From positions 1 through 64,000 of the forward strand of contig NIVC01001205.1 in the NCBI GenBank assembly GCA_002269645.1: a DNA stretch of 64,000 bases. The letters run 5' to 3'. The notes beneath the pieces were generated by a model that was given only the letters and a program-made list of their open reading frames with translations, did not search any database and was not told the origin of the DNA. Position numbers and translations under genes: made by a program. Of this stretch, positions 17,701 through 63,327 are shown in pieces. Numbering within the stretch: the first letter of the stretch is position 1; the number at the start of each line of letters is the position of its first letter. Source of the stretch: Macrostomum lignano (Eukaryota).

Positions 17701-20559
17701 AAGTGCAAGATGTTTTATTAAATATTTATAATTTATCTTATGGTCACCAAACCATGATAAAATCGTCTTAGTCCCCCCTCTGACCAACCATATATTACTG
17801 CTAAGATGTCAGCAGCAGTGTTGCTAGGGAGGTTGAAAATATTATCTGTGAATTTTTAAGCTTGCAGTCTGGTTTGGTCAGCAGGGCTGGCCATAGACTA
17901 TCGCTGCCCAGTTTTGGGCTGGTCAGCAGGGCTGGCCATAGACTATCGCTGCCCAGTTTTGGGCTGGTCAGCAGGGCTGGCCATAGAGTATCGCTACCCA
18001 GTTTTGGGCTGGTCAGCAGGGCTGGCCATAGACTATCGCTACCCAGTTTTGGGCTGGTCAGCAGGGCTGGCCATAGACTATCGCTACCCAGTTTTGGGCT
18101 GGTCAGCAGGGCTGGCCATAGACTATCGCTACCCAGTTTTGGGCTGGTCAGCAGGGCTGGCCATAGACTATCGCTGCCCAGTTTTGGGCTGGTCAGCAGG
18201 GCTGGCCATAGACTATCGCTACCCAGTTTTGGGCTGGTCAGCAGGGCTGGCCATAGACTATTGCTACCCAGTTTAACACACTCTGCTATGCACACAGTGG
18301 TCTCAAACTTATTTCTAAGATAAATCGCTTTTAGTGTCTCTATTATACTGCACTTTTCTAAAGATACACCGCGATATGTGATATGTGATTATCAGAATGT
18401 CTTCAAGGACTTTAAGTCAGTGCTATGACGGATCGCTCATTTCTAAAAGTACATTTCAAGCTAACCTGTTCAAGCCAAACGTTTGTCGTTAGAACCTGGT
18501 TGACCTCGTCCTGAAACAGAAAGAAAACAATAATGGATAATATTATTCAGAAGCTTTCAGTTGCTTTCAAGTTAGATAATTAAGGTATAAAAAATCTTGA
18601 TAAATGACTGCAGGTATGGCAAACCATATCCGTGATGAGGATCAGTGCGAAGCCGAACGTCACCGTGACCTGATCGGACGCGTTGATCACCGGACGAACG
18701 GAGGCGTCGTAACGCTGCATCATCGCCTCCATCAGTCTCTGTTCGTCCGGTTTAACCCGACCAGGCCTGGGTTCGAGCGCTCCTGCTGGGGTGGTGATAG
18801 ATGGGGAATCAGGGAGGATAAACCAAACTCACCAGCTGAGAGATCTGCACCATGGCTATCTGGAATCGAACTTCAACAGTTTTTCCAGCATGAATTGTCG
18901 GCCTGGATGCCGGATCGTACGAGGACAATATTCGATGCAGAAGTCTTTGTTCGTCAGTCCAAGTGGACTGATTGAACGCAGAGCATTCGCTACATCTGCT
19001 GGCTACAAAGACTATGATGGAACAAAGAGTTAAGAGTCCAGTTGGTCTGCCGTGCATGTCTGTAATGTCCGTTGTTCGAGAAGCGTGTAGCTAAGGGAAT
19101 CCACAAGCGACGGTATGGCCTTTTTAGTAGAGATTCGCCACTCGCAATTCGTCAGTTGATTTGTCAACAGACCATGGGGAAGAGAGAGACAGACTCAGCT
19201 CGCAGCTTGTCTCTCTATTCTCAGCCTTCCTCCCGCCCTGGTCGAATTTGTGGAGCAGCTCGAAGCAAGAACTCAAAACGCCACGTCGCCTCGCATTGTA
19301 ACACGCCTCAGCGGCCCTTTGCTCTACCTCTGATCTATATTGACTGGGATAACTTCGTTATTCAGACTGTGGTGAGCTTTTAGGCCTCTCCTGATCATCG
19401 GCTTGCTGCCTACTGGGTGCACGCGAGCATCAAAATATGTTTTTCTTTTTTGACAAAAAACACTTTTTTATGCAGGTGTTTTTCTGCGTTAATTATAATT
19501 AATTTTCGCTGTCAGAGAAATTCTTTATTTCGATTTTTTACAATTAACTACGAGTAATAAAATCGTCGTTATTATTCTTTTTTTACTACTGACAGTAGAC
19601 TGTTGAGGTATTTGTTGAATTTTTCTAGTTGGGAATCTTTGAGAAGTTTTTCTTCGAATCGTAGAGTTTTCAGTTAATCCTCATGATCCAAGCTCCAGCT
19701 CAATGCACACTGAAACGGATTAAGGGAGCTTTCTAGGAAACACCTGCTCAGATTCGATGATAAATTGATGCTGCTGAGTTGAAAATGCATCAAACCCTGG
19801 TAAAGGATTATTTAAAACTTTCCTGAGTTTTACGGCTTAACAGGTTTTGCTAGTTGGGTTACAGTTTGCAGGCTTTGAGCTCCACTGCTCAGTAGTAGTT
19901 TTTGTAGTTTGTGAGAGTTTCTGTAGTTTGTGAGAGTTTCTGTTTAGTTTGTGAGAGTTTCTGTTTAGTTTGTGAGAGTTTCTGTTTAGTTTGTGGGAGT
20001 TTCTGTAGTTTGTGAGGGTTTCTGTTTAGTTTGTGAGAGTTTCTGTTTAGTTTGTGAGAGTTTCTGTTTAGTTTGTGGGAGTGTCTGTTTAGTTTGTGAG
20101 AGTTTCTGTTTAGTTTGTGAGAGTTTCTGTTTAGTTTGTGAGAGTTTCTGTTTAGTTTGTGAGAGTTTCTGTTTAGTTTGTGAGAGTTTCTGTTTAGTTT
20201 GTGAGACTTTCTGCTGTTAAAAAATCTTTCAAAACGCAATTAGAAACTATTCTAAATTAAAAGTGGTCAATTTAGTCCCTAGGAAACTGCTCAAAATGTC
20301 ATTGCTGTGACATCCTAAAAAAGAGTTTTCCCACGAAGTACACGTAACACCGAATCAAATTACCTTCACTTTAACTAACTTTTGGCTTTCCAGTGCCCCA
20401 ACAAAACAACTAAGAAAGTTAATCAAATCAAGCTCACTCAACCCTACCTGAGACTTGAGTAGCTACAGTGCCAGAAACCAGAAGCAGACTTGAAGAAGCA
20501 GCAAAGATTAAAAGCAGGCTTTTCTTCAACAAGAAGTTGTCGAGTGCTTTAAGAGCCAT
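11761..20559 (-). CDS. Nicotinic acetylcholine receptor (Cys-loop, cation-type) subunit, non-alpha-like, 8 exons; one-base frameshift in this assembly
   Basis: join(20559-20448, 18782-18625, 18510-18466, 16765-16656, 16099-15902, 15828-15750, 13233-12976, 12479-11761); all junctions are GT-AG and phase-compatible. Has a signal peptide, [33 protein letters not shown], Cys-loop [23 protein letters not shown]1-M3 ([11 protein letters not shown]; [12 protein letters not shown]) and M4 ([15 protein letters not shown]). Confidence 0.95.
12605..12835. repeat. Degenerate ~17-18-bp repeat (TTCACACAGTTATCTTR) in the last nAChR intron
   Basis: Recurrent TTCACACA cores in tandem. Confidence 0.75.
13290..13960. 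repeat. 26-bp minisatellite with 16-bp truncated variants (nAChR intron)
   Basis: Unit CAGCTGAGATTAGATTTAGCCTGAGA. Confidence 0.95.
14449..15695. repeat. 21-bp minisatellite, about 59 copies (nAChR intron)
   Basis: Unit TCTATTTCCATCAGTTCCATG; source of the spurious MELMEID and SISISSM ORFs. Confidence 0.97.
16141..16652. repeat. 23-bp minisatellite filling nAChR intron 16655-16100
   Basis: Unit TGTGTCAGTGTCTGTAGAATCAG; runs to within a few bases of the donor. Confidence 0.97.
16880..17200. repeat. 23-bp minisatellite (nAChR intron)
   Basis: Unit TACTGACACATCTACTTAAGCAC. Confidence 0.95.
17871..18275. repeat. 45-bp minisatellite, about 9 near-identical copies (nAChR intron)
   Basis: Unit GGTCAGCAGGGCTGGCCATAGACTATCGCTACCCAGTTTTGGGCT. 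Confidence 0.97.
18833..19057 (-). CDS. Alternative nAChR N-terminal exon (paralogous to exon 18782-18625)
   Basis: Encodes [27 protein letters not shown]...[42 protein letters not shown] and ends at a phase-0 GTGAGT donor (18832) compatible with exon 18510-18466. Confidence 0.8.
19905..20212. repeat. 21-bp minisatellite (nAChR intron 1)
   Basis: Unit GTTTAGTTTGTGAGAGTTTCT. Confidence 0.95.
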
Positions 20560-20859
20560 TCTGAACTGCTGTTCAACTCAATTTTCTGTTGATAAAAACC
20601 TTGAAGATTTTCAGCCTCTCTGCTTCAGCTGCGGTTACCATGGTGGGGGGAAGTGATCTTATGCTCTCGAAGGAAGCTGGGAACAGATGGAGCAGCTAAA
20701 TTCACTGCCATTGGTTGCCACGGTGCAGAAACTTCGTAAGAATTTTCAGCTAGCAAAGAGGCAAAAGAGTTCTTGTCTGAGTGTGAATTTAATTTAATTC
20801 AGTATGTTCAGACAGTGATCAAAGCAGCGCTCAAGTCAGTGACATAAGTCTCTCATCAG

Positions 20860-21610: not shown

Positions 21611-22004
21611 GACGGTAATGTCAGTGAAATTAGCAAATTTTCAAATCGACATTTTTCATCAACTGAGCTGATCACATCGATTGGTATATCACATTGGCAT
21701 AAAAACATTTGGGCGGTTCACTTCACTTATAGCTTCATTACAGCCTTACGGTTTAAGATACATTTTATGATCTTTCGTGCGCAATTTCGCACTACGAGCT
21801 TAAAGTCTTCCTAATTGGATTGGATTTTTATGGCTTCCGGTATAATTTTTTTCGGGGTTGAACGCGTCTGTTTTCTTGACTTGTCTGTGCCTGTCTGATA
21901 GTACTCGTAGGTTCACCAATGGCAGACCGCAATGTCCCTTATGGCTGAAGCTAAATATGCTGCCAGTTGCCATTAGTTAAGAATTCTCGCTTCTGCCGTA
22001 ACAA

Positions 22005-23360: not shown

Positions 23361-23891
23361 CTCCCGTCCTTACGTTTATTAGCTAAAAATGAACTTATAT
23401 TTCGGTTGCAAAATCTGCCTGCCAGCCACGCCAAGCCCCCCCCGCACTGCATATTTCTATAAAACTGTCTGGGCTACCCGCTATCACACTGCATCTGGCA
23501 TCCTTGTGTCTGACAGACTCTCAGCCAAGCTCAACTCCGCAGCCCCTTACTCGCTGTCTTTTTGTCCTGAGTTGAATAGACAATACTCGTATGCATTCAG
23601 TTTGGCCCGTTTTCTGTACAAGTGCTTCTGCACTTACGAGTATAATATAGTATATATACTTTTGAATATCGCTAATATTAATTAAAATCCTGAATCGTAA
23701 TGGGGCACACTGAAGTCCCTTTTTACAAGGCAGCAATATGACTCACCCTGCGCTACTATATTTAGATTTATTTTATAGCTATCCTTGATGCCAAAAAAAT
23801 TCTTCATCTACTTAACCTAAACACATCGGAGCTATAGGAGCCTGGCTTGGCAAATTTGAGAACCCTAATTCACTGCAGGGCCCGTGTTTTC

Positions 23892-26800
23892 ATGGCTGCA
23901 ATTAACGTTGTCAGCTGGCTCCTGATTCTGGGGCTGTTCTCTCACTGTTCAGCCACAAATATTCGACTCAATACCGATTACAGGCTTGATAACATTCTGA
24001 TTTTAGTTCAGAATGAAAACTTTGCCTCGGTTGATAACATGAAGGCGCTTAAAGTGAGTCAGGCTATTTTCAGAATAAAAAATATTTGTTATCGTATTTT
24101 CTATGGTAACTGCCACATACAGACTCTCATCCCATCTCACCTCCACTCTCACCCCGGTCCCCATCTCACCTCCACTCTCACCGCATCTCTCCTGCACTCT
24201 CACCCCATCTCTTCTCTACTCTCACTCAATCTCACCTCCACTCTCACCCCATCTCTCCTCCACTCTCACCCCATCTCTTCTCTACTCTCACCCCATCTCT
24301 ACTTCACTCTCACCCAATCTCACATCCACTCTCACCCCATCTCTCCTCCACTCTCACCCAATCTCACCTCCATTCTCACCTAATCTCACATCCACTATCA
24401 CCCCATCTCTCCTCCACTCTCATCCCATCTCACCTCCACTCTCACCCCATCTCACCTCCACTCTCACCCCAAGTCACCTCCACTCTTACCCCATCTCACC
24501 TCCAACCTCACCCCTTCCGTCCGCAGGGCTATCTAGCCTATGTTTCGCACCAGATGGCCCGAGCAACCGAGGCTGTTGGGCGGCGCATTTCCATTAATAC
24601 TGTCCGCCTGCTGGTTCCGCCAAGTAAAATCGCTGAGCTAAAGAATGCTGGCGTCTTCCCGTCCATGCCCGCCACCTGGGAATCCGAGGTCTCCGCCGAT
24701 GTCGTGCTGGAGAATCCTGGTGGAAAAGTGAAGACCATCCCGGCCGATGAGTGCTACGGGCCAAACAAATGGATTAAAATGCCCGAATACACGGTTCGGA
24801 GGAACGGTGAGTGACAAGTTCGCGTCTCGCTTCCATATGAGAGCTGAAGGGTAGGCGAACTGGGCCTGAGCCCTCTCCAACCTGTCCCTGTCTGTCTGTC
24901 TGACTGTCTGTCCCCGTCTCCAACCTGTCCCTGTCTGTCTGTCTGACTGTCTGTCCCCGTCTCCAACCTGTCCCTGTCTGTCTGTCTGACTGTCTCCAAC
25001 CTGTCCCTGTCTGTCTGTCTGACTGTCTCCAACCTGTCCCTGTCTGTCTGTCTGACTGTCTGTCCCCGTCTCCAACCTCTCTCTGCCTGTCTGTCTGTCC
25101 CTGTCCTCGACATGCCTGTCCGTGTCCCCAACCTCTCCCTGTCTCCCTGTCCCTGTCTCCAACCTCCCCCTGTCTGTCTGTCCCTGTCCCCGACCTCTCC
25201 CTGTCTGTCCGTCCCTGTCTCTGACCTCTCCCTGTCTGTCTGTCCCTGTCTCCAACCTGTCCCTGTCTGTCTATCCTTGTCTCCAACCTGTCCCTGTCTG
25301 TCTGTCCCCGTCTCCAACCTCTCCCTGTCTGTCTGCCCATGTCTCCAACCTCTCCCTGACTGTCTGCCCATGTCTCCAACCTCTCCCTGTCTGTCTGTCC
25401 CCGTCTCCAACCTCTCCCTGTCTGTCTGTCCCCGTCTCCAACCTCTCCCTGACTGTCTGTCCCTGTCTCCAACCTCTCCCTGTCTGTCTGTCCCTGTCTC
25501 TAACCTCTCCCTGTCTGTCCCTGTCTCCAACCTCTCCCTGTCTGTCTGTCCCTGTCTCCAACCTCTCCCTGTCTGTCCCTGTCTCCAACCTCTCCCTGTC
25601 TGTCTGTCCCTGTCTCCAACCTCTCCCTGTCTGTCCCTGTCTCCAACCTCTCCCTGTCTGTCTGTCCCTGTCTCCAACCTCTCCCTGTCTGTCCCTGTCT
25701 CCAACCTCTCCCTGTCTGTCTGTCCCTGTCTCCAACCTCTCCCTGACTGTCTGTCCATGTCTCCAAACTCTCCCTGACTGTCTGTCCATGTCTCCAACCT
25801 CTCCCTGTCTGTCTGCCCATGTCTCCAACCTCTCCCTGACTGTCTGCCCATGTCTCCAACGTCTCCCTGTCTGTCTGTCCCCGTCTCCAACCTCTCCCTG
25901 TCTGTCTGTCCCCGTCTCCAACCTCTCCCTGACTGTCTGTCCCTGTCTCCAACCTCTCCCTGTCTGTCTGTCCCTGTCTCCAACCTCTCCCTGACTGTCT
26001 GTCCATGTCTCCAACCTCTCCCTGACTGTCTGTCCCTGTCTCCAACCTCTCCCTGTCTGTCTGCCCATGTCTCCAGCCTCTCCCTGTCTGTCTGCCCATG
26101 TCTCCAACCTCTCCCTGACTGTCTGCCCATGTCTCCAACCTCTCCCTGTCTGTCTGTCCATGTCTCCAACCTCTCCCTGTCTGTCTGTCCCTGTCTCCAA
26201 CCTCTCCCTGTCTGTCTGTCCCTGTCTCCAACCTCTCCCTGTCTGTCTATCCCTGTCTCCAACCTGTCCCTGTCTGTCTGTCTGACTGTCTGTCCCGTCT
26301 CCAACCTCTCTCTGCCTGTCTGTCTGTCCCTGTCCCCGACATGCCTGTCCGTGTCCCCGACCTCTCCCTGTCTCCCTGTCCCTGTCTCCAACCTCCCCCT
26401 GTCTTTCTGTCCCTGTCCCCGACCTCTCCCTGTCTGTCCGTCCCTGTCTCTGACCTCTCCCTGTCTGTCTGTCCCTGTCTCCAACCTGTCCCTGACTGTC
26501 TGCCCATGTCTCCAACCTCTCCCTGACTGTCTGTCCATGTCTCCAACCTGTCCCTGTCTGTCTGTCCGTGTCTCCAACCTCTCCCTGTCTGTCTGTCCCT
26601 GTCTCCAACCTCTCCCTGTCTGTCCCTGTCTCCAACCCCCGTCCCTTTCTCAAAAGCAGAGAAAGCAATGCTGTTTACTTTCCTTGATTCATCTATTGAT
26701 TTAATTCCAGCAACTGCCAATAGTTTTCTCCGCGAGCTGTCCATCTACCTGTGGGGCCTGCTGTCAGAGTCGGTCAGCGGAGTGCAGTTCTATCAGGATG

Positions 26801-29800: not shown

Positions 29801-32800
29801 AGCTGCTTGACCTTTGCAAAAAAGCATGTTTTTCGAATATTTAATCCCTTTATTATTGAGCAATTTCTTAGCCAAGATGCATGTACAGTCACGGGAAAAT
29901 TTCTGATCGAACAGTGCTAGTTCGAACAAAATCGGTCCAGCCATTTTTTCTCTAATCGATCACATAGACACAGACAGACCATTTTTAGTATATAGGACTA
30001 GCAATCTTTGCCCCCCGATGGGGGACATCTGGATAGAACTTCTGTTCTCTACAAGTAAAAAAAAACCGCCAAATAGAGTCTTCACAAAGACAACAGAAAA
30101 ACTGCTCAAATGAAGCGCAATGCAAAAAGAAAACATCCCACGACAGCAAGCATCCCCCCTCCTCCCAGATAGCAAGCATCCCCCGATAGCAAGCACCCCC
30201 AGATAGCAAGCACCCCCAGATAGCAAGCACCCCCAGATAGCAAGCACCCCCAGATAGCAAGCACCCCCAGATAGCAAGCACCCCCAGATAGCAAGCACTC
30301 CCAGATAGCAAGCACCCCCAGATAGCAAGCACCCCCAGATAGCAAGCATCCCTCAGATAGCAAGCACCCCAGATAGAAAGAACCCCCAGATAGCAAGTAT
30401 CTATCCTTAAATAGCAAGCATCCACCAGACAAAAAGTATATAGTGCAACATTTCCTTTTAGCTTTCTAGGGGCTCCTTTATGATTGGCATGACGCTTCTT
30501 ATTACGTTTGAAAATGTCTCTCCTGTGGTTGAAATGGTGACTATTTTATGTTTGAATTGGTGGCTTTTTAATGTCTGGCATGGTGACTCTTTAATGTTCT
30601 ACATGGTGGCTCTTTAATGTTTGACATCGTGCCAGTTTTATGTTTGTCATGGTGGCTCCTTAATGTTAGAAACGGTGGCTCTTTAATGTTTGACATGGAG
30701 TCACATATATGTTTCACATGGTGGCTCTTCTATGTCTAACTTAGTAGCTCTTTTATGTTTGACATCGTGGCTCGTTAATGTTCGACATGGTGGCTCTTTA
30801 ACGTTCGACATGGTGGCTCTTTAATGTTCGACATGCTGGCTCTTTAATGTTTGACATGGTGGCTCTTTAATGTTCAACATGGTGGCTCTTTATTGTTTGA
30901 AATGGTGGCTCTTTAATGTTCAACATGGTGGCTCTTTATTGTTTGACATGGTGGCTTTTTAATGTTTGACATGGTGTCTCTTTATTGCTCGACATTGTGG
31001 CTCTTTATTGTTCTACATTGTGGCTCTTTAATTTTCTACATTGTTGCTCTTTAACGTTTGACATGGTGGCTCTTTAATGTTCTACATGGTGGTTCTTTAA
31101 TGTTTTACATTGTGGCTCTTTAATGTTCTACATTGTGGCTCTTTAATGTTCGACATGGTGGCTCTTAAATGTTCAACATGGTGGCTCTTTATTGTTTGAC
31201 ATAATGGCTTTTTAATGTTCGACATGGTGGCTCTTTACTGTTAGAAATGGTGGCTCTTTAATGTTAGACATGGTGGCTCTTTACTGTTAGAAATGGTGGC
31301 TCTTTAATGTTAGACATGGTGGCTCTTTAATGTTCTACATGGTGGCTCTTTAATGCTCTACATGGTGGCTCTTTAATTCTTGAAATGGTGGCTCTTTAAT
31401 GTTCGACATGGTGGCTCCTTTATGTTTAACATGGTGCTCTTAAATGTTCGACATCGTGGCTCTTTAATGTTTGACATGGTGGCTCTTTAGTGTTTAACAT
31501 GGAGTCACGTATGTGTTTGACATGGAGTCACGTATATATTTGGCATGGAGTCACGTATATGCTTTACATGGTGGCTCTTTTATGTTTGACATAGTGGCTC
31601 TTTAATGTTTGACATGGTGGCTCTTTAATGTTTGACATGGTGGCTCTTTTATGTTTGACATGATGGCTCTTTAATGTTCGACATGGTGGCTGTTTAATGT
31701 TTGTTATGTAGTCATATGTATATGTTTTACATGGTGGCTCTTTTATGTGTGACATGGAGTCACGTATATATTTGACATGGATTCACATATATCTTTGACA
31801 TGGTGGCTCTTTAGTGTTCGATATGGTGGCTCTTTAATGTTTGACATGGTGGCTCTTTTATGTTTGACATAGTGGCTCTTTAATGTTTGACATGGTGGCT
31901 CTTTTATGTTTGACATGATGGCTCCCTAATGTTCGACATGGTGGCTGTAAATTGTTTGTTATGTAGTCATATGTATATGTTTTACATGGTGGCTCTTTAT
32001 GTGTGACATGGAGTCACATATATATTTGACATGGAGTCACATATATGTTTGACATGGTGGCTCTTTAGTGTTCGATATGGTGGCTCTTTAATGTTTGACA
32101 TGGTGGCTTTTAATGTTCGACATGGTGGCTCTTTAATGTTAGACAGTGAGTCACGTATATGTTTGACATGGTGGCTCTTTAATGTTTGACATGGTGGCTC
32201 TTTAGTGTTTGACATGGCTCTTAAATGTTTGACATGGTGGCTCTTTAATGTTAGACATGGTGGCTCTTTAATGTTCTACATGGTGGCTCTTTAATGCTCT
32301 ACATTGTGGCTCTTTAATGCTCTACATGGTGGCTCTTTAATGTTCTACATGGTGGCTCTTAAATGCTTGACATTGTGGCTCTTTAATGTTCTACTTATTG
32401 TGGCTCTTTAATCTTCGACATGGTGGCTCTTTAATGTTCGATATGGTGGCTCTTTATTGTTTGACATGATGGCTCTTTAATGTTTGACATTGTGGCTCTT
32501 TAATGTTCTACATATTGTGGCCCTTTAATGTTCGACATGGTGGCTCTTTATGTTCTACATTGTGGCTCTTTATTGTTTGACATGATGGCTTTTTAATGTT
32601 CTACATTGTGGCTCTTTAATGTTTGACATTGTGGCTCTTTAATGCTCTACATGGTGGCTCTTTAATGCTTGACATTGTGGCTCTTTAATGTTCTACTTAT
32701 TGTGGCTCTTTAATCTTCGACATGGTGGCTCTTTAATGTTCGATATGGTGGCTCTTTATTGTTTGACATGATGGCTCTTTAATGTTTGACATTGTGGCTC

Positions 32801-35800
32801 TTTAATGTTCTACATGGTGGCTCTTTAATGTTTGACATAGTGGCTCTTTTATGCTTGAAATGGTGGCTCTTTAATGTTCGACATGGTGGCTCTTTAGTGT
32901 TTGACATGGTGGCTCTTTTATGTTTGACATGATGGCTCTTTAATGTTCGACATGGTGGCTGTTTAATGTTTGTTATGTAGTCATATGTATATGTTTTACA
33001 TGGTGGCTCTTTTATGTGTGACATGGAGTCACGTATATATTTGACATGGATTCACATATAAGTTTGACATGGTGGCTCTTTAGTGTTCGATATGGTGGCT
33101 CTTTAATGTTTGACATGGTGGCTCTTTTATGTTTGACATAGTGGCTCTTTAATGTTTTACATGGTGGCTCTTTTATGTTTGACATAATGGCTCCTTAATG
33201 TTCGACATGGTGGCTGTTAATTGTTTGTTATGTAGTCATAGGTATATGTTTTACATGGTGGCTCTTTTATGTGTGACATGGAGTCACGTATATATTTGAC
33301 ATGGAGTCACATATATGTTTGACATGGTGGCTCTTTAGTGTTCGATATGGTGGCTCTTTAATGTTTGACATGGTGGCTTTTAATGTTCGACATGGTGGCT
33401 CTTTAATGTTAGACAGTGAGTCACGTATATGTTTGACATGGTGGCTCTTTAATGTTTGACATGGTGGCTCTTTAATGTTTGACATAGTGGCTCTTTAATA
33501 TCTGACATGGTGGCTCTTTAATGTTTGACATGGTGGCTCTTTTATGTTCGACATGGTGGCTCTTTAATGTACGACATATTGGCTCGTTTATGTTCGACAT
33601 GGTGGCTCTTTAATGTTTGACATGGTGGCTCTTTTATGCTTGACATGGTGGCTCTTTAATGTTCGACATGGTGGCTCTTTTATGTTTGACATGGTGGCTC
33701 TTTTATGCTTGACATGGTGGCTCTTTAATGTTTGACATGGTGGCTCTTTAATGTACGACATAATGGCTCGTTTATGTTCGACATGGTGGCTCTTTAATGT
33801 TTGACATGGTAGCTCTGTTATGTTCGACATGGTGGCTCTTTTATGTTTGACAATGTGGCTCTTTAATGTTTTACATGGCGGCTCTTTTCTGTTCGAAATG
33901 GTGGCTCTTTAATGTTCGACATGGTGGCTCTTTAATGTTTGACATAGTGCTCTTTAATGTTCGACATGGTGGCACTTTAATGTTCGACGTGGTGGCTCTT
34001 TAATGTTCGAAATGGTGACTCTTTTATGTTTCACATGGTGGCTCTTTGATGTTTGACATAGAGTCACGTATATGTTTTACATGGTGCCCATGTAATGTTT
34101 GACATGGTTCCTCTTTTATGTTTGACATTGTGCTTTTTTATGTTTAGCAGTTTCGTGTTTTCAAGGTGTTTTATAAAAAAATTATTTTGCACTACTAAGA
34201 TTCGAACCCAGGTCGCTACGTTGGCAGTCCAGTCTGTTCGTATCTAGGCTATCTCTTTTCAATTGGAGTACATGAATTGTGGCCCTTATAATTCAATAGT
34301 TACAGCAAGTTGGTTAGAGTAAAAAGTTATGACATAATCAATTTCTCAGTCAGCCAGATTCAGTCTCAATTTAGGTTTGCAATATGGTTACGCAATTTAA
34401 ATCAAGTCGTGTGCACATTTCTTCGACACTGTTTTCAACTGGTTGTGATGCAATCTTTATCAGAATTGAAATTCATTCAGCAAGTTTTTTCTCTAGCATT
34501 CTGACAATGCATTTCAAGTTGAAAACTTTGCTTGACCTTTGCAAAAAAGCATGTTTTTCGAATATTTAATCCCTTTAACATTGAGCAATTTCTTAGCCAA
34601 GATACATGTACCGTCCCAGGAAAATTTCTGATCGAATGGTGCAAGTTTGAAAAAAATCGGTTGAGCCAATTTTTCTTAAATCAGTCGCATACCCATATAC
34701 ATACATACATACAGACAACTCATTTTTAGTATATAGGACTAGCAATCTTCGCCCCCCGATGGGGGACATCTGGATAGAACTTCTGTTCTCTACAAGTAAA
34801 AAAACCCGCCAAATAGAGTCTTCACAAAGACAACAGAAAAACTGCTCAAATGAAGCGCAATGCAAAAAGAAAACATCCCAAGACAGCAAACATCCCCCCT
34901 CCTCCCAGATAGCAAGCACCCCCAGATAGCAAGCACCCCCAGATAGCAAGCACCCCCAGATAGCAAGCACTCCCAGATAGCAAGCACCCCAGATAGCAAG
35001 CACCCCCAGATAGCAAGCACCCCCAGATAGCAAGCACCCCCAGATAGCAAGCACCCCAGATAGCAAGCACCCCCAGATAGCAAGCACCCCCAGATAGCAA
35101 GCACTCCCAGATAGCAAGCACCCCCAGATAGCAAGCACCCCCAGATAGCAAGCACCCCCAGATAGCAAGCACCCCCAGATAGCAAGCACCCCCAGATAGC
35201 AAGCATCCCTCAGATAGCAAGCACCCCAGATAGAAAGAACCCCCAGATAGCAAGTATCTATCCTTAAATAGCAAGCATCCACCAGACAAAAAGAATATGG
35301 TGCAACATTTCCTTTTAGCTTTCTGAGGGCTCCTTTATGATTGGCATGACGCTTCTTATTACGTTTGAAAATGTCTCTCTTGTGTTTGAAATGGTGGCTA
35401 TTTTATGTTTGAATTGGTGGCTTTTTAATGTTTGGCATGGTGACTCTTTAATGTTCTACATGGTGGCTCTTTAATGTTTGACAATTTATGTTTGTGCCAG
35501 TTTTATGTTTGTCATGGTGGCTCCTTAATGTTAGAAACGGTGGCTCTTTAATGTTTGACATGGAGTCACATATATGTTTCACATGGTGGCTCTTCTATGT
35601 CTAACTTGGTAGCTCTTTTATGTTTGACATCGTGGCTCGTTAATGTTCGACATGGTGGCTCTTTAACGTTCGACATGGTGGCTCTTTAATGTTCGACATG
35701 GTGGCTCTTTACTGTTTGACAATGTGGCTCTTTAATGTTTGACATGGTGGCTCTTTAACGTTCGACATGGTGGCGCTTTAATGTTCGACATGGTGGCTCT

Positions 35801-43817: not shown

Positions 43818-45337
43818 CAAAGTGATAAAGTGATATTGATTCGTAAAACATAGCATCGAGATTGAGATCTGAAAAAAATATTTTGGTGAGAGGCAGGAAA
43901 ACCAATTCACTGAAAAAAATTAGTGATAGTTGGCAAGGAATTATCTAAAACAAAAACGGCCCTTTTCGGGGTCAGGGCGCATATAGCTATTGCAGAGGAC
44001 AAGTTTCAGAACAACTGCCAATTATCTTTGTTTTTATTCCTTTATCTGCTTACCAGTATCCCATTTTCTTATCTATCCAATCTTCCTCATATTTTGGGTG
44101 TCGCTCGTGTCATAATAAACAAATAATTCCATTGTACATAAATTGGAATAAAAATCTGTAGTTATAACAAAACAGAACTAATTAAATATGAGAAGTTGAT
44201 AAAAGAACAAGTGTAGTATTAAAAAATAATATTGGGAACAAAGAGGGATAGTTTCATTTTTACAACTTAAAGAGGGCCTTTTAAGGACCCACATATCTTA
44301 ATATAAAAATGCTAACCAGCATTGATTTATTGATCTCTTTCGTTCTCTAATTTTTGTTATGCTCCTATTGTTTTCGAATTTATCATACCTAAATGTTATT
44401 AATTCCTGGCCTACAGCTAATCATTAGAATAGATCTGATGTGATTGATAGCTATAGTTTTATTTTAGGTGTCATCGCGGCAAATTTAAAACGGCCCTTTT
44501 AAGGCCTTAGAAAGAGAAAATTGTTTAATTATTACATTGAGTCAATCAGCTCTTTCATTTTATTTCATTTTAACTCTTTTGGAGATTTTTAATTAAATGT
44601 CTACATTATTTACTTATTCATTTTTTAAACAGAAGAGCTATAATTGTTAACATTGAAAATCATGTTTTTCGTTGCCGTTATTCAAGACTACTAAGGTTTG
44701 CCCAAGGCGCTTGTTGCTTAATTTAGAGATATACTATTTTTTAAATTTTTTCTACACTGAGTTAAAAATTAAAGCTCTGAGTTAAAAATTTCTTAAGGTA
44801 CATTTTAACCTCCCGGAGACCTGTCTGGCGGACTACTAGTATTTATAACAAATACGTCAGAATTTGAAATAATGTTACAAATAAATGACATCAGTAGCTT
44901 TGCTACCAGTAAAAGAAAACTTCTCTCTAAACTTCTATACTTTTTTCTCTTTTGCAGTTGCATTAGGAGAGTGGTAGGTGCTACAGGACTCGCAACTCGC
45001 TTAATGCGCACTTACACACACACTGTCTGTAGGAGCCTACAGTAAAAAATTGTATAGCAATTACGGGCTACAATTATAATCGCGGATCCTGCCAGGGTAA
45101 TTTATCATCTACAGTTGCTCTTTAGAACTATCGTTGTCTATACTTCTTAAGCTTATAATTCTGTCTCTCGTAAAGTCCTGGATGTCTATAGTATATTTAT
45201 TGAATAAAACTCGCTGTCTCAACTCGACAGCTACAGCTATTATTTATAAAAGTGAGCATAGACTCAAAATACGGATAAAAGACTTCGAACTTCTGAAGCT
45301 GTTCTCTGGAAAAAAAATTTGTTAAAGCGCAATTAAG

Positions 45338-56095
<10,758 letters not shown>

Positions 56096-56664
56096 CTGAA
56101 GGCTGACGTTCAGTCTTGTTAATCTTACCAAAGAGATACCATACCGATTTTGTACCGAACCGAAACTCATTCAAAACTTTATTGTTTTATATTTTATTTT
56201 ATTGAGTAAGTTTAGAAAGTAGAATAAAGCTGTGCTTATATCATGCTGTGGGACACCCTGGGGCACACTATCCTGCCCATTCCGCGCTGAGCTACTGAGC
56301 ACATGTATTCAAGCGGTCAGGCAGGTACACGCTCTCATGGCCTCATGGCTGATGTAGATACACTTGTGATAGCTTTGGTTATCTGTATGTAATATTTACA
56401 CAGAAAATCTTTTAAGTAAAATTGAAATTTGTTTTTTTACTATAAACTCTGCTTACTCTGGATTTGTTTATTTGTTTTAATTCAATTGCGATGGACCATG
56501 AAACTGTCTAAAAAAATATGCTATCCATCCAGATTTTGAATTTTACTTGCATATATGACTTTTATACTGTACTTCACAAACTTTCGTCTGGGTACCCCAG
56601 TGGCATAATGTCAATGTTGAAAACTGGGAAAAGATAAATTCCCTCCTTGAATTCCCCTTCCACC

Positions 56665-57470
56665 AACTGAGAGAATTCTCCTCGGCAACTGTGTCTGAGA
56701 AAAATCCCCTGGGCAACTGAGAGAATTCTCCTGAGCAACTGAGAGAATTCCCCTGAGCAACTGAGAGAATTCTCCTGAGCAACTGAGAGAATTCTCCTGA
56801 GCAACTGAGAGAATTCACCTGAGCAACTGAGAGAATTCACCTGAGCAACTGAGAGAATTCTCCTGAGCAACTGAGAGAATTCACCTGAGCAACTGAGAGA
56901 ATTCTCCTGAGCAACTGAGAGAATTCACCTGAGCAACTGAGAGAATTCTCCTCAGCAACTGGGAGCATTCTCCTGAGCAACTAAGAGAATTCTCCTGAGC
57001 AACTGAGAGAATTCTCCTGAGCAACTGAAAGAATTCTCCTAAGCAACTGAGAGAATTTCCCTGAGCAACTGAGAGAATTTCCCTGAGCAAATGAGAGAAT
57101 TTCTCTTTAATAAAATGTGAGAATTCTCCTCAGCAACTGAGAGAATTCTCCTGAGCGACTGAGAAAAATCCCCTGAGCAACTGAGAGAATTCCCTGACAT
57201 ACTGAGAGAAATCCCCTGAGATGCTGAGAGAATTCCCCTGAGATACTGAGAGAAATCCCCTGAGATGCTGAGAGAATTCCCCTGAGATACTGAGAGAAAT
57301 CCCCTGAGCAACTGAGAGAATTCCCCTGAGATACTGAGAGAAATCCCCTGAGCAACTGAGAGAATTCCCCTGAGATACTGAGAGAAATCCCCTGAGATAC
57401 TGAGAGAATTCCCCTGAGATACTGAGAGAATTCTCCTCAGAAATTGGGAGAATTCTCCTGAGCGGCTGAA
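56665..57470. repeat. 22-bp minisatellite between the convergent CLCA-2 and calmodulin-like genes
   Basis: Unit CTGAGAGAATTCTCCTGAGCAA, with the palindrome GAGAATTCTC. Confidence 0.95.
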
Positions 57471-57876
57471 AGAAATCCCCTCCAAGCAACAGACAAAAGT
57501 CAACGTCACAGTTGAAAAAATCTCTTTTATACCCGCAAAAGATTCCCTTGTAAGGCGGATAAGACATTCCTGAGACATTCTGGAGCGACTCCTGTAAAAA
57601 AATTCTCATGAAATTTATTAAAGCTTACAAATAAGTGAACTCGAGTTACCCGATGCTTATATAAAAAAGCGAAATCATAATTTTCAATTGAATTTGCATT
57701 TCGAATTTACAATACAATTGAAATTTGCAGTAAATAAAAATTTTTAGATCGCATTACTAAAACACGCAGAGATCGCGAATATAAAGTACTTTATGAACTT
57801 GTATTTCAGTTCGCAGTGTCATTCCCAGCAGCAATAAAATGCAAGCCTCTTGGAGAAGGCGCAGGCCTGGCGCCCC

Positions 57877-59710
57877 TCACTGCTTGGCCATCATGGCCAT
57901 GAACTCCTGGAAGTCAATCTCTCCATCACCGTTCATGTCGGCCTCTTTAATCATCTCTTCCACCTCTTCATCGGTGAGTTTCTCGCCCAGGTTGCACATC
58001 ACCGCCTTGAGCTCGGCAGGGGAGATGAAGCCGTTGCCGTCTTTGTCGAACACCTGGCAATTTGATTATATGGATACAGGTTGAGGTGTGAGATCGCCGT
58101 GTACTGATTCAATATCGCTTTAGCTTTAGCACCAGAGGCGCCAGCACCAGAGGCGCCAGCACCAGGGGCGCCAGCACCAGGGGCGCCAGCACCAGGGGCG
58201 CCAGCACCAGGGGCGCCAGCACCAGGGGCGCCAGCACCAGGGGCGCCAGCACCAGGGGCGCCAGCACCAGGGGCGCCAGCACCAGGGGCGCCAGCACCAG
58301 GGGCGCCAGCACCAGGGGCGCCAGCACCAGGGGCGCCAGCACCAGGGGCGCCAGCACCAGGGGCGCCAGCACCAGGGGCGCCAGCACCAGGGGCGCCAGC
58401 ACCAGGGGCGCCAGCACCAGGGGCGCCAGCTCTAGGGGCGCCAGTAATATAGTAATGTTTACCACTTTTATAGTTTTCTATAATAATAAGAATGTAATTT
58501 TTTAATATTAACAGCCCGAGGGCTGCAGGCGCCTATGGCGCCATCGTTCTACAACCAGCGCTGACTGCAATTCGGCCCATTCTGCTGACTCCTGATCACA
58601 TTCAAGGGCGCCAATACTGTACGCAGGCACAGCACTCGTGCACCCGCTCACACAGGGTGTACAACGGCCTTGAGTCGGACGCGTTTACGCTGATCTGCTT
58701 CGCACCATAGGATGCGTGATTTACGCAAATAATGCTTACTGGCACTTCGTACTCATGTCACGTTGAAACTTAATTCTAATTAGATACCCAAGCATCTCTG
58801 CATTACTGCTAGAGTATTGTTACTCTCGCTGTTTACTCAAGAAAATGAGCAATGGAAGATAAAAAACTTTGTATCAATAACTTGTAAAATAATTTTCATT
58901 GTCTTCCCGACTGCCATTTGAGTGTCAGTAAGCCCTGAGTTGAGTGTCAGTGAGCGCTGATTTGAGTGTCAGTAAGCACTACTGATTTTAGTGACAGTGA
59001 GCGCTGATTTGAGTGACAGTGAGCGCTGATTTGAGTGACAGTGAGAGCTGATTTTAGTGACAGTGAGCACTACTGATTTGAGTGACAGTGAGCGCTGATT
59101 TGAGTGACAGTGAGCGCTGATTTGAGTGACAGTGAGCACTACTGATTTGAGTGACAGTGAGCACTACTGATTTGAGTGACAGTGAGCACTACTGATTTGA
59201 GTGACAGTGAGCACTACTGATTTGAGTGTCAGTAAGCCCTGATTTGAGTGTCAGTAAGCCCTAATTTGAGTGTCTGTAAGCGCCAATTTGAGTGTCACTA
59301 AGCGCCAGTCTTAAGCTCCAATTCAAGTCTCAAAATACCTAGCCAGTACTCAAACACAGAATTGCAATTTTTCTCACCCTGAACGCCTCTTTGAGCTCCG
59401 CCTCCGTGTCCGTATCCTTGATCCTCTTTCCCATGAGGATGCAGAACTCCTCAAAATCAATAATCCCATTCCCATCGATGTCGATCTCCCCAATCATGTC
59501 CTGCAGCTCGGCCTCCGTGGGATTCTGGCCGAGAGCTCGCATCACAGTTCCCAACTCCTGGGTAGTGATGGAGCCAGAGTTGTCTTTGTCAAACAGACCG
59601 AACACTTCCTTCATATCGTTCACCTGCTCCTCCGTCATGTCTTCGATGCCTCGGAATGTGTTCGAATCGCCTGCCGCAGGCGACTCTTCTGCCGCTGCAA
59701 AGTCTGGCAT
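57877..59710 (-). CDS. Calmodulin-like protein (4 EF-hands, ~20-aa N-terminal extension), 169 aa, 2 exons
   Basis: join(59710-59378, 58053-57877), phase 0. EF loops [48 protein letters not shown]; [14 protein letters not shown] and [15 protein letters not shown]. Too diverged to be the canonical CaM. Confidence 0.95.
58126..58445 (+). repeat. 15-bp GC-rich minisatellite (calmodulin-like intron)
   Basis: Unit GCACCAGGGGCGCCA, about 21 copies. Confidence 0.97.
58925..59310. repeat. 22/25-bp minisatellite (calmodulin-like intron)
   Basis: TTTGAGTGACAGTGAGCGCTGA, with CTA-insertion variants. Confidence 0.93.
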
Positions 59711-61286
59711 TGCTGAAGAGTTGTTGCTGCTTTGAGAGCGAGAGAGCTTCTTCTACAGTCTGCCTAACCGCTACCAGGGACTCCGTTGGTTTTTTTACTC
59801 TCAGGCCAGAATTTTGTTTATGCATCTGCGCAGCTATACGGGTGATGATGAGCATGGAGGTGCATTTTAGTGTGCTTTTCATTTCGTTCGAAGCTGTGCG
59901 AATTGTGGGAGGGTCGGTTGGCTTCTTTGAACCGCTGCCCCCAACCTAGCCTACCCCTACACCCCCCGACCGTAATTCGCTGGAAGTGCAAACAATGTCC
60001 ATGGACCTCATGCAGCGAGATCTGGACTGAAAGACGAACTTGATCCGTTCGATAAGTAAATCAGTCTAGCAAATTCTCTGCAATCCAGTGAATAATATTG
60101 AAGGATCCTGATGAAAGATCCGGGAGTTGAATTAGCTCAACGGTAATTTGGTGTTTTTGTGCCAAAATTGACCCATTGGGTTGCCAGACATGAGGGCCAA
60201 CCCCAAAACGCATGTATGAGAGAATGCTTGTATGAGTATTCATGTAAATTTTGGAGTCTAGATGGACATCCAACCGATGCAAGATTATTTTATTTTTTTT
60301 TCCAATCCAAGAATCCAGAGGTCCTTGCAATAGCGCTTCGCTCCGCTGCAGTGTACGTTTTTTCTGCATTTTTCTTTTCATTGTCCTGAGAGAACAGCTT
60401 TAAGCATAGCCTCGCCAATATGCCAAGCGTGCGCCACTCATAAAAGTGAACCTCTATATAGAGCAATTCTATTTAGAATAAAATAAAAATGCAAACGAGG
60501 TGGGACAAGTTTTATTACCAAGCTGCACTACTCTTCGAATATATAAGTAGCTATTTAGGAAAGCAGATTATCTACAACACTAAAAGAGGATAATTTTATC
60601 CAGATTTACAATGTTTGTTCATTTAACACCGGAAATTTAACGCAAAACAATAGTTTGTACGAGTATAAAGTAATCGATAACCGGATGCGTCTAAAACAAG
60701 TTATAAATGTTAAAATTAAAATTACAACGAAAGAAAACCCTTTTTAAAAATAAAATATAGCAGTTATAATGTTTGTTTAGATCTATAATACTACGGAGTA
60801 AGAATACAGTACAATAAGTTTCCTAGAAAAAGGTTTGAAAAAAAATCATGGCTTTACACGAAAAGGTACACGATCAACATAGAAATTGTTTCTTTATGAC
60901 AAAGAAAGAATAGATAATCATTATCGTTGATTTTCAAATGCTGGTCTTAATTAAGCTGAATTGTCAGCTTTTATCGCTTCATTATTTTAAATTTTATGCA
61001 AAAAAAGATTTATAGTATACATTTTAATGAGCATTTTGTTTTTATGAGTCAGAAAATATTTCTATTTTTACGTCTAAAAAAATTTGATAGTGTAATTTCT
61101 AATTTTTTGCTTAAAACGCCAGCATTTAAAGGGTTTTCGAAAAATCGTTCGGATTTACCTTCTTTGCTTTGACTTTATGACGTCTAGCTGTACGAGTACA
61201 ATAAGCTTGAATTCACACGCAGGTTAGTCTGAGAACAATTAGGAACTTAATTAGGCAGCGCATGGTTTGCCTGTTGGAGTCAGTTG

Positions 61287-62980
61287 TCATGGTAACCTGC
61301 CGAAGCAGTGCAGACTGTCGCGTCCTTGGCTACCTGCGGCGACCACGCAGATTCCGTTGGCTGGCGAGCCGCTGCAGGCCAGGCCGCGCGGTCTCCAGGC
61401 TGCGGTCTCCGCAGATTCCGGCTTGATTTGCCCGCCGCTGATTGGCGCGTCAACGAAGGCGCCCTCCAGGCTGTGCCGCGCCACCCGGTGCGCGCCGGAG
61501 TCGCAGAGCAGCACGTGACGTCCAGAGGCGTCGAATCTCAGACCGAATGGCTGCTGCGGCTCGTCCTCGGTGCTGGCGGCCCACAGGAAGGCGAGAAGGT
61601 CGCCGCGTGGATTCAGCACTGCGGCTCTGCCGTTCTCAATGTCTGACACGGCTATGAAGCCGTTGTCATGGCAACAGTCGACGTAGCTGGGTCTTAACGG
61701 TCGGTCGCCTTTGCCCAGCTCGATCGTGGCCAAGTGACGTCCTTCAGCGTCGAGTCTGTAGAGCCTACTGGAGCTCAGGTCGGTGAGCAGCAGGTGGCCC
61801 TCCCTGGTGGAGCAGATGTCTGCTGGGGAGCGACAGGCGCCGTCAGGCAGAGGCGGCGCGCGGCCCAGCGAGTGGCCGAAAACGCTGCGACATTCGATGC
61901 GACCGAGGCGCCAGTCGGTGACCCAAAGCGCATGGTTGGTCACCTTGATTGGGAACAGGAGTGTGGGAGGGCAAAGACAATAATTCAACTACGCGCACAA
62001 ATTCATACATATTAGGGAATACAGAGGGAATTGCAGAGATTTTTAGGCTCACAGGGGGAATTGCTGAGATGCCAAGACTCACAAAGGGAATCGCAGAGAT
62101 GTTAAGGCTTACAGGGGGAATTACTGAGATGTCAAGGCTTACAGGGGGAATTACTGAGGTATCAAGGCTTACAGGGGGAATTACTGAGATGTCAAGGCTT
62201 ACAGGGGCAATTACTGAGGTGTCAAGGCTCACAGGGAGAATTGCTGAGATGGCAAGGCTCATATAGGGAGAATTGCTGAGATGGCAAGGCTCATATAGGG
62301 AGAATTGCTGAGATGGCAAGGCTCATATAGGGAGAATTGCTGAGATGGCAAGGCTCATATAGGGAGAATTGCTGAGATGGCAAGGCTCATATAGGGAGAA
62401 TTGCTGAGATGTCAAGGCTAAGGTCAGAAGCTGCGACATGTAGTTTATTAAAAAATTGTTTTTCATTCTTTGTTAGCTACTATATAATAGTTCTAAAACT
62501 TTAATAAATTCCAATTAATGCGTTGTGCATACATATGGAAGGTGCAATGCCCTTGTGGGATGTCTTGTGAAGGTTTGATGACCTGGGAAGGGACGATGTC
62601 CTCAGGGGGACAAACTAGTCTCTAATAATAGTCTCTATAAACTAGTCTCTAATTCAGGTCCGCACTCATATATGTTTCCTGGAAACTGGAAAACTCACCT
62701 GACAAACTCCAGCAGGAGAGAAGTCAAATCCCAGTCGGACCTGATAGTCCCATTGGGGCAGCCCGGAAGCTGAGAAGTAGACCAGTCGGTGTTCAGCAGC
62801 GTCAGGCACCAGCCAGTCAAGTCCTGGCAAGTCGCTGATTGCACAGGCGCTGCGCCAGAGCACCGCCGAGCCAGACGGAGGCCTGTAGGTCCAGCGCCAT
62901 TGCAGATCGGCCTGCATGGTGCAGTCTGCAGAGAATTCAATACGAGAGCCTACAGTAGCTTTCTTCTGCACTTGTGGCAT
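61287..62980 (-). CDS. NHL-repeat (six-bladed beta-propeller) protein, at least 2 exons
   Basis: join(62980-62699, 61943-61287), phase 0, about 312 aa. NHL-like blades: SPADIC...GHLLLTDL...RLYRL, RPSYV....NGFIAVSD.ENGR..V, QPFGL.FD..G..VLLCDSGAHRV, RPRGLA. Upstream exons are possible. Confidence 0.8.
62025..62420. repeat. 30-bp then 32-bp minisatellite (NHL gene intron)
   Basis: GGGGAATTACTGAGATGTCAAGGCTTACAG grading into AGGGAGAATTGCTGAGATGGCAAGGCTCATAT. Confidence 0.93.
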
Positions 62981-63327
62981 CGGCTGTGAGAGCAGTCAGT
63001 TTTGTTTTAACTGGATTATAGCAGAAGGCAAGTGTACTTCGAGAACGGTTACTGTACACAGTTTTAGAGGGGTGTGTACTCCTCTATTTGTAGTGGCTGA
63101 GGGTAGAGAGAAAGGTACAATAGAGAGTCTAGAGATGCCAAACAGCTGGGAGTGAGCTGCAGCAGCTCTTACTTTTCTCTGCCCATACTGTGTTCATCCA
63201 AGGAGAACTACGTGTAGGACCTGTGATAGCAATTAACTTCTATTTAGTAGTCCCTGATCCTAGCATGCAGTGTTACCTAGCTACAACTTCATATACATAT
63301 ACGGTACAGGTAGCTATTGCTTGCACT

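Follow-up and report, generated by a model that had tools for sequence, protein, structure and literature searches.

In nematodes and tunicates the spliced leader (SL) acceptor typically lies within a few nucleotides of the AUG, as it does in Caenorhabditis elegans with its outrons and SL1 acceptors, where an unpaired 3′ splice site near the start codon marks a trans-spliced gene. Acceptors at the locus described here may be of the same kind, although C. elegans belongs to another phylum, the flatworm Macrostomum lignano has a single SL and we know of no SL2-type operon specialisation in M. lignano. The outron and SL1 work on C. elegans is that of Conrad 1993 and Allen 2011, as cited in PMC8629364; for SL trans-splicing in M. 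lignano the sources are Wasik 2015, as cited in PMC8629364, and the relevant parts of Wudarski 2017 (PMC5730564). The M. lignano SL is 35 nt long and ends in ATG (...TTGCATG); its sequence is CGGTCTCTTACTGCGAAGACTCAATTTATTGCATG, with the 3′ end ...AATTTATTGCATG (PMC8629364, PMC5730564). Between 30 % (PMC8629364) and 38.8 % (PMC5730564) of the genes, or roughly 30-39 %, carry it, the top motif of the acceptors is [T/C]TNCAG (PMC8629364, PMC5730564), and published work found the trans-spliced genes to be enriched among conserved and stem-cell genes. Operons are documented as well, with about 15 % of the genes assigned to them (PMC8629364). The criteria of Ustyantsev & Berezikov 2021 (PMC8629364) place the genes of an operon side by side on one strand, uninterrupted by a gene of the other strand, require the downstream gene to be SL trans-spliced, and apply a cut-off of 1 kb after repeat subtraction to intercistronic distances that have their mode at about 100 bp. 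The published M. lignano pipeline cuts transcripts at SL peaks, and SL, T-fill and RAMPAGE tracks exist for the NIVC01001205.1 scaffold. Flatworms commonly use their SL acceptors for cis-splicing too, at 20-95 % of sites (PMC12582326, MBE 2025), and the 3′-terminal AUG of the SL has been described as an initiator (Cheng et al. 2006, as cited in PMC12582326 and PMC9851317).

The window, by which we mean the whole stretch of 64,000 nucleotides that was analysed, corresponds to NIVC01001205.1:1-64000 in the Mlig_3_7 assembly of M. lignano. Its positions 51287-64000 match NIVC01001205.1 with 100 % DNA identity at the same coordinates, and BOX15_Mlig034509g1 and BOX15_Mlig020900g2 are 100 % identical to the NHL exon and the CaM-like exon, respectively. 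A first-pass annotation of the unlabelled sequence had guessed at an SL-trans-splicing animal such as a flatworm, which was correct, and its reservation that the species might lack SL RNA falls away with the published SL trans-splicing of M. lignano (PMC8629364, PMC5730564). Within the 64-kb window itself neither an SL RNA gene nor any Rfam family was found. The locus resembles the described M. lignano system in species and assembly, in its [T/C]TNCAG acceptors, in exons that begin a few nucleotides before the AUG and in the presence of same-strand neighbouring genes. It differs in that two of the sites first proposed are off the motif and a third stands before the wrong ATG, and in being known here from its sequence. 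The features are collected in Table 1.

Table 1. Coordinates of the features discussed, in window positions (a slash marks the end of the AG)
Feature	Position	Strand	Detail
nAChR common exon 3	18466..18510	-	15 residues; strong polypyrimidine acceptor tttctgtttcag
nAChR exon Y	18625..18785	-	no ATG; paralogous to 3′ part of exon X
nAChR exon X	18833..19061	-	ttacag/ac ATG; consensus acceptor TTACAG (AG 19061-19060), 2 nt, ATG 19057
nAChR exon A	20448..20562	-	ttcag/a ATG; acceptor-like ttcAG (20562-20561), 1 nt, ATG 20559
CLCA-1 start	23873..23894	+	CTGCAG 23873-23878, 13 nt, ATG 23892; signal peptide MAAINVVSWLLILGLFSHCSA
CLCA-2 start	45333..45340	+	ttaag/ATG; ATG 45338; non-consensus AG (AAG), purine-rich tract upstream
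Lectin start	52204..52214	+	ctcag/caa ATG; ATG 52212; off TNCAG
CaM-like exon 2	58053-57877	-	
CaM-like exon 1	59378..59714	-	cttcag/ca ATG; consensus acceptor CTTCAG (AG 59714-59713), 2 nt, ATG 59710; donor G 59377
NHL to CaM-like intergenic	59715..61286	-	unique sequence
NHL last exon	61287..61943	-	NHL repeat; stop codon 61287-61289
NHL exon 2	62699..62931	-	consensus acceptor CTGCAG 62931-62926; exon start 62925; donor G 62698
NHL start first proposed	62980..62985	-	cacag/ccg ATG; ATG 62980; annotated intron 1; not start codon

The six AG-to-ATG contexts quoted in the first-pass annotation are all present in the window exactly as given, and cactgcag is seen before the ATG of CLCA-1, where a CTGCAG had been noted 13 nt upstream. 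The chance rate of about 3/64 given there is also correct: of the 2196 ATGs that the window contains, 4.8 % are preceded by a CAG at 0-3 nt (21.6 % for any AG). A CAG at this distance from five of eight starts has P = 1.2e-5. After correction of the starts, TNCAG is found no more than 13 nt upstream at five of seven of them against a background of 3.7 % (P = 1.4e-6), in a sample of seven to eight genes whose start codons were picked by eye, which brings some selection bias. The full YTNCAG is found at four starts, those of nAChR exon X, CaM-like, CLCA-1 and NHL, and nAChR exon A has TNCAG without the full [T/C]TNCAG; the motif is missed at CLCA-2 (ATTAAG), at the lectin (ACTCAG) and at the NHL site first proposed (TCACAG). 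Thus the claim that an AG lies 0-3 nt before six of eight start codons holds in its contexts and in the enrichment, which is real, and gives way at the NHL ATG, which was the wrong one, and at CLCA-2 and the lectin, which are off-motif. Moving the NHL start to 62917 makes the acceptor pattern stronger, in a more specific form.

It could be argued that these AGs are not splice sites at all and reflect chance or a translation-initiation context. Any AG is frequent next to an ATG, the ATGs were chosen by eye, a lectin transcript model reads through the proposed AG, and a plain AG at two of the three remaining starts (P = 0.12) is compatible with chance; the AGs of CLCA-2 and the lectin are probably chance occurrences. 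For the other five starts, each with TNCAG within 13 nt (P ~1e-6), such an origin is very improbable. The distance from TNCAG to ATG varies, being 1 nt at nAChR exon A, 2 at exon X, 2 at CaM-like, 8 at NHL and 13 at CLCA-1, which fits a splice site better than an initiation context of fixed position, and the NHL acceptor is used in a model derived from RNA-seq. It tells against splice sites that the polypyrimidine tracts are weaker at the acceptors near the ATG than at internal acceptors of the same genes, and in their favour that the acceptor and ATG contexts of CaM-like and NHL are conserved in three copies in the assembly that are otherwise about 96 % identical.

Most of the AGs near an ATG would accordingly be understood as genuine 3′ splice sites, with the first coding exon starting 1-13 nt ahead of the AUG, at nAChR exon A, nAChR exon X, CaM-like, CLCA-1 and the corrected NHL start. 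[quoted passage not shown] As in other flatworms, cis-splicing from a non-coding exon further upstream could make use of the same acceptor as well. We consider it probable that the TNCAG acceptors are 3′ splice sites, most likely SL trans-spliced and possibly used in cis as well; that an SL is actually added at any of them is what we infer.

The NHL gene shows both sides of this question. Its start had been placed at ATG 62980, a site inside annotated intron 1, and that ORF is broken in both paralogous copies, where a 2-nt indel gives ATG CCA CAA GTG CAG AAG AAA GCT ATC TAG. Conservation in both copies begins instead at CTGCAG/ACTGCACC ATG CAG, and the conserved start is the ACC ATG at 62917, 8 nt past the CTGCAG acceptor. 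In the deposited annotation exon 2 is joined in cis to an exon at scaffold positions 65446-65374, outside the window, with the donor GCAG/GTGAGT (scaffold 65373) and an AT-rich, TATA-like sequence upstream. Splicing in cis to an upstream exon had been named beforehand as evidence against an SL, and it is what the deposited annotation shows at the real acceptor. All of the acceptors might in this way be explained by cis-splicing only, with a 5′-UTR intron, an upstream non-coding first exon and its own promoter for each gene, and no SL. The deposited NHL model, Mlig034509.g1, has exactly such an upstream exon, and for nAChR the acceptor before both ATGs would be accounted for by a common non-coding exon 0 that is spliced either to exon A or to exon X. 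However, both paralogs lack the upstream exon of NHL and still retain the acceptor and the ATG, and in nematodes and tunicates it is typically the SL acceptor that lies so near, within a few nucleotides, to the AUG. We regard cis-splicing only as rather unlikely. The NHL acceptor resembles the dual-use acceptors of parasitic flatworms in being annotated as a cis site and yet having the SL consensus just before the AUG; in the parasites, unlike here, dual use has read-level evidence, and at this locus it is what we infer from the acceptor. Upstream in-frame stops proved uninformative as a guide to where the transcripts of the NHL paralogs begin, and a Logan contig considered as a transcript (L003, a 68 % NHL relative) was rejected as genomic, an intron acceptor preceding its exon.

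The first-pass annotation had further proposed that NHL and CaM-like form an operon, with SL addition at CTTCAG/CA ATG. The two genes are adjacent, NHL then CaM-like, on the same strand in all three copies, CaM-like has the full consensus acceptor 2 nt before its ATG, and about 15 % of M. lignano genes are assigned to operons in the published work (PMC8629364). The spliced CaM-like product has 169 aa and is identical to P0003. Against an operon stands the distance from the NHL stop to the CaM-like acceptor, 1.57 kb of unique sequence in contrast to the mode of ~100 bp and the 1 kb cut-off of described M. lignano operons; the gap contains neither tandem nor dispersed repeats, so there are none to subtract, and it would fall to 1 kb or less only if the NHL 3′ UTR exceeded ~570 nt. 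Poly(A)-signal hexamers are found 258, 770 and 992 nt past the NHL stop, the first of them telling against an operon, and the CaM-proximal half of the gap, which is GC-richer (44 %, against 30 % in the NHL-proximal half), could hold a promoter of its own. The proposal is thus left unsupported, and a two-gene operon appears unlikely to us.

The N-terminus of the nAChR gene (P0123, Pfam Neur_chan_LBD and Neur_chan_memb) exists as two alternative modules, exon A with exon Y, or exon X; either one supplies a signal peptide together with the first helix and strand of the ligand-binding domain. Exon A encodes the signal peptide only and ends at the donor TCAG/GTAGGG (G of GT at 20447, phase 1). Exon X encodes its own signal peptide and the start of the ligand-binding domain, with the donor CTG/GTGAGT at 18832, and the acceptor of exon Y, ccccag/CAG, lies 47 nt past that donor. 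The reading frame continues from exon A into exon Y, the same protein segment is encoded alternatively by exon X or exon Y, both modules join exon 3 in phase 0, and the remainder of the gene extends to a stop codon at ~11761. Alternative SL trans-splicing may be what picks the N-terminus, by way of SL to exon A to exon Y or of SL to exon X. TNCAG stands 1-2 nt before both ATG-bearing exons, X and Y are paralogous alternatives that continue into exon 3 in the same phase, and in flatworms it is common for SL acceptors to be internal and for one acceptor to be used both in cis and in trans (PMC12582326). The structure would be explained equally well, however, by an intronic promoter or by a non-coding exon common to both modules; of the two M. 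lignano nAChR models among the matches, for which UniRef is the only source, one concatenates exons X and Y and the other lacks the N-terminus; and joining exons A and X in cis would keep the frame too. We therefore put the alternative use of the SL forward as a tentative possibility. A more specific form, in which SL addition at the exon X acceptor (TTACAG/AC ATG) is in competition with a cis join between exons A and Y and so chooses the paralogous N-terminal module, is doubtful, and it recalls the dual-use acceptors of parasitic flatworms in that the exon X acceptor could be joined either to exon A, in cis and in frame, or to the SL.

The CLCA genes contribute one site to the pattern, that of CLCA-1, whose downstream exon has a Pfam CLCA match. 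For CLCA-2 it had been suggested that the lectin nested in one of its introns is released from the CLCA-2 pre-mRNA by SL trans-splicing at CTCAG/CAA. The lectin is indeed nested in CLCA-2 and shares its strand, a lectin CDS on a paralogous scaffold lies, in the same orientation, within the annotated range of a CLCA-2-like gene, and an SL added at this site would have its AUG in the lectin frame. The acceptor, on the other hand, is off TNCAG and lacks a pyrimidine tract, the ~600 nt of unique, GC-rich sequence in front of the lectin could be a promoter, and poly(A) cleavage of the lectin would truncate the host CLCA-2 transcript. The lectin copy in the window is frameshifted. In its paralog a 5′-partial CDS derived from RNA-seq begins 36 nt upstream of the ATG (equivalent to window position 52176), at no AG, and reads through CTCAG/CAA; given that the published pipeline cuts at SL peaks, this continuous CDS means that the transcript was not cut there, although the evidence is indirect, coming as it does from how a paralogous copy is annotated. 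Release of the lectin in this manner is very unlikely.

We also considered whether the AUG at the end of the M. lignano SL could discriminate among the sites, as in the initiator role described for flatworm SLs. At the sites of CLCA-2 and the lectin this AUG would share the frame of the ORF, at the consensus sites it would not, and all of the genes here have an AUG of their own. At the consensus sites it would give short overlapping uORFs at nAChR exon A (MNGS and a stop), exon X (10 codons) and CaM-like (26 codons), and at NHL an overlapping frame open for > 77 codons. The reading frame was dropped as a discriminator: among the trans-spliced mRNAs of Schistosoma mansoni only ~28 % have the SL AUG in frame (PMC9851317), and since an out-of-frame SL AUG is tolerated there, the mixed frames seen here are no objection.

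The only transcript-derived information speaks against an SL, at two sites, through the cis-spliced NHL exon and the read-through of the lectin paralog. Exact-protein look-ups among Logan/ENA transcript contigs for CaM-like, NHL and lectin ORF1 returned genomic NCBI scaffolds or nothing, and the portion of Supplementary Table 2 of Grudniewska 2018 (PMC5816591) consulted for its {TRANSSPLICED} flags has no rows for Mlig034509 or Mlig020900. Only some of the genes at this locus belong to the classes in which trans-splicing is enriched, conserved and stem-cell genes.

The pattern described here is already known M. lignano biology, and in biological terms it adds nothing beyond the published SL work on this species. 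What it shows is that someone reading raw sequence can recognise a genome with SL trans-splicing by the acceptors right next to its start codons, a useful heuristic for genomes that are unannotated. Its practical value lies in corrections to gene models, namely the NHL start at 62917, the CaM-like protein of 169 aa, the frameshift in the lectin and the alternative modules of nAChR. If competition between cis- and trans-splicing does operate at the nAChR gene, a Cys-loop receptor subunit would be diversified by the choice between the two kinds of splicing and not by alternative promoters, and the locus would offer a concrete case of such competition making protein isoforms in a free-living flatworm.

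Macrostomum lignano adds a single 35-nt spliced leader (SL), CGGTCTCTTACTGCGAAGACTCAATTTATTGCATG, to its transcripts at acceptors whose top motif is [T/C]TNCAG (PMC8629364, PMC5730564), and the share of genes given the SL has been put at 30% (PMC8629364) or 38.8% (PMC5730564). About 15% of the genes are assigned to operons, with an intercistronic distance whose mode is about 100 bp and a working cut-off of 1 kb after repeat subtraction (PMC8629364); several SL sites occur in about 7% of transcriptional units. The first-pass annotation guessed rightly that this DNA came from an SL-trans-splicing flatworm or nematode, a biology already known and published for this very assembly. Positions 51287-64000 are identical to NIVC01001205.1 at the same coordinates (locus L004, the database locus on that scaffold; GCA_002269645.1, Mlig_3_7), and the window is therefore its first 64 kb. 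The NHL and CaM-like exons are 100% identical to BOX15_Mlig034509g1 and BOX15_Mlig020900g2 of M. lignano, and Pfam backs the gene labels (a Cys-loop receptor, two CLCA-like genes, a double C-type lectin, an EF-hand protein and an NHL protein). The NHL, CaM-like and lectin layout recurs on NIVC01001950.1 and NIVC01000255.1 in copies about 96% identical.

Tandem repeats (minisatellites with units of 12-60 nt) make up 47% of the window, almost wholly in introns and intergenic DNA. They break the deposited transcript models, as in the paralogous CLCA-2-like CDS, which begins directly after an array. A 15-16-mer AGCACCAGGGGCGCC array and its reverse complement, at 58128-58444 within the CaM-like intron and 63329-63482 upstream of NHL, bracket these two genes in inverted orientation; a comparable inverted pair lies in CLCA-1 introns (GTCCCGTGTCTAACA at 40867-42034, a related array at 42729-43254). 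A CLCA-1 intron also holds a segmental duplication of about 5 kb, with near-identical unique blocks at 29960-30425 and 34593-35289, each followed by a long array of the 23-mer satellite TTGACATGGTGGCTCTTTAATGT (30529-34145 and 35383-37793).

All six AG-before-ATG contexts on which the first-pass annotation had built were found verbatim on the implied strands, as was the CTGCAG 13 nt before the CLCA-1 start (cactgcag, ATG 23892). As background we took all 2196 ATGs of the window on both strands: an AG of any kind ends 0-3 nt upstream of 21.6%, a CAG of 4.8% (in agreement with the proposed chance rate of 3/64), TNCAG of 1.3-1.4% and YTNCAG of 0.7%. A CAG near the start in five of eight genes has P = 1.2e-5 and the enrichment is therefore not due to chance, although selecting the start codons by eye qualifies this result. 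With corrected starts, TNCAG lies 1, 2, 2, 8 or 13 nt upstream in five of seven start codons, four of them with YTNCAG; TNCAG within 13 nt precedes 3.7% of background ATGs, so P = 1.4e-6, or 3.7e-6 when the count includes the gene at 6241, close to whose start no AG lies. The uneven spacing fits splice sites and does not fit a Kozak-type context. The observation stands in part, as to the contexts and their non-randomness, but one start was mis-assigned and two AGs are off motif.

Positions of the features discussed (lectin and upstream NHL coordinates also in the database loci L005, the paralogous copy, and L004)
Feature	Position	Strand	Description
nAChR exon A	ATG 20559 through 20448	minus	signal peptide only; ends in phase 1
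nAChR exon X	acceptor TTACAG, ATG 19057 through 18833	minus	own signal peptide plus first helix and strand of ligand-binding domain
nAChR exon Y	18785-18625	minus	no ATG; in frame with exon A
nAChR exon 3	18510-18466	minus	phase-0 join from exon X and exon Y alike
C-type lectin copy	window 52212-54156 versus L005 14597-15565	plus	indel/frameshift and 24-nt-scale insertion
CaM-like	57877-59712	minus	annotated on this scaffold as a 123-aa intron-retaining ORF
NHL exon 2	acceptor CTGCAG 62931-62926, exon start 62925, ACC ATG 62917	minus	consensus acceptor and conserved ATG; annotation and conservation
NHL upstream exon	scaffold 65446-65374, outside window (L004 10001-10073)	minus	donor GCAG/GTGAGT; deposited annotation

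The mis-assigned start is ATG 62980 of NHL. In both paralogous copies a 2-nt indel breaks the ORF, which becomes ATG CCA CAA GTG CAG AAG AAA GCT ATC TAG; conservation covers all sequence from CTGCAG/ACTGCACC ATG CAG on, and the paralog annotation (291 aa) begins at the same conserved ATG. The corrected start has its consensus acceptor 8 nt upstream. In the first-pass annotation, cis-splicing to upstream non-coding exons would speak against SL addition, and the deposited 318-aa model cis-splices the upstream exon to this acceptor, the sole transcript-derived evidence there. That exon is absent from the homologous region of either copy; most likely it is a non-coding leader peculiar to this scaffold's copy, with an ORF that arose by chance. 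It (MVLALGLQLSSINLAFLEYATNVA) is AT-rich, with a TATA-like sequence 20-30 nt upstream.

The CaM-like acceptor, CTTCAG/CA ATG, is a full consensus site kept in all copies, and the two-exon spliced protein (169 aa) is identical to the matched protein model P0003 and differs at no position from what the paralogs encode. An operon with NHL had been suggested. Between the NHL stop (61287) and the CaM-like acceptor lie 1.57 kb of unique, repeat-free sequence, with 30% GC in the NHL-proximal half and 44% GC in the CaM-proximal half; poly(A) hexamers follow the stop at +258, +770 and +992. By the published distance criterion the operon is borderline to negative. CLCA-1 (stop about 43817) and CLCA-2 (ATG 45338), tandem plus-strand paralogs about 1.5 kb apart, form a second operon-like candidate that had gone unmentioned, with a non-consensus CLCA-2 acceptor.

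The two off-motif AGs belong to CLCA-2 (TTAAG/ATG, an AAG after a purine-rich tract) and the lectin (CTCAG/CAA ATG, conserved in three copies). Two plain AGs among the three remaining starts are compatible with chance (P = 0.12). The lectin is indeed nested in CLCA-2, since the paralog lectin CDS lies within the range of a CLCA-2-like gene on the same strand. Its release from the CLCA-2 pre-mRNA by SL addition is disfavoured, because the published TBONE pipeline splits a transcript wherever an SL peak falls (PMC5730564), yet the paralog CDS, 5'-partial and beginning 36 nt before the ATG with no preceding AG, runs through the proposed acceptor. The gene is unannotated on this scaffold, and its two overlapping ORFs correspond to one continuous ORF in the paralog; either the copy is pseudogenised or the assembly contains an indel.

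The nAChR 5' region is more than a pair of alternative ATG exons. Two alternative paralogous N-terminal modules, exon A plus exon Y or exon X, occupy 18625-20562 (minus strand); exon Y starts 47 nt past the exon X donor, and its paralog is the 3' portion of exon X, which supplies the same ligand-binding-domain segment. Given the shared A/Y frame and the common phase-0 joins, the predicted isoforms are A+Y+3... and X+3.... Splicing exon A to exon X in cis would likewise keep the frame. The nAChR matches listed name UniRef alone as source, and one of these protein models, P0123, merges exons X and Y. Alternative trans-splicing, as had been proposed, is possible, and conventional explanations do equally well; that cis- versus trans-splicing selects the module seems to us unlikely.

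Exact-protein look-ups returned no transcript contigs or SL-containing sequence for these genes, the portion covered of the supplementary tables that carry {TRANSSPLICED} flags lists none of them, and the 64-kb window holds no SL gene or Rfam family. The first-pass interpretation was sound on the biology of the species, and its gene-specific extensions are contradicted in part (the lectin and the NHL site). We take the TNCAG sites before these starts to be real 3' splice sites leaving 1-13 nt of gene-encoded 5' UTR. SL addition at them is the likeliest mechanism; cis-splicing from upstream non-coding exons, of which the NHL annotation shows a case, may be a rival or an added use of the same sites. 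Of the SL acceptors of parasitic flatworms, 20-95% take part in cis-splicing as well, and internal SL acceptors exist (PMC12582326). Every reported flatworm SL has AUG as its last three nucleotides (PMC9851317). Were the SL added here, our frame computation would place this AUG in the reading frame of CLCA-2 and of the lectin; at the consensus acceptors overlapping out-of-frame ORFs would arise, short at nAChR exons A and X and CaM-like, and open for >77 codons at NHL. In Schistosoma mansoni, only about 28% of the mRNAs that receive the SL have its AUG in frame (PMC9851317), and judging by such flatworm data an out-of-frame SL AUG would be tolerated.
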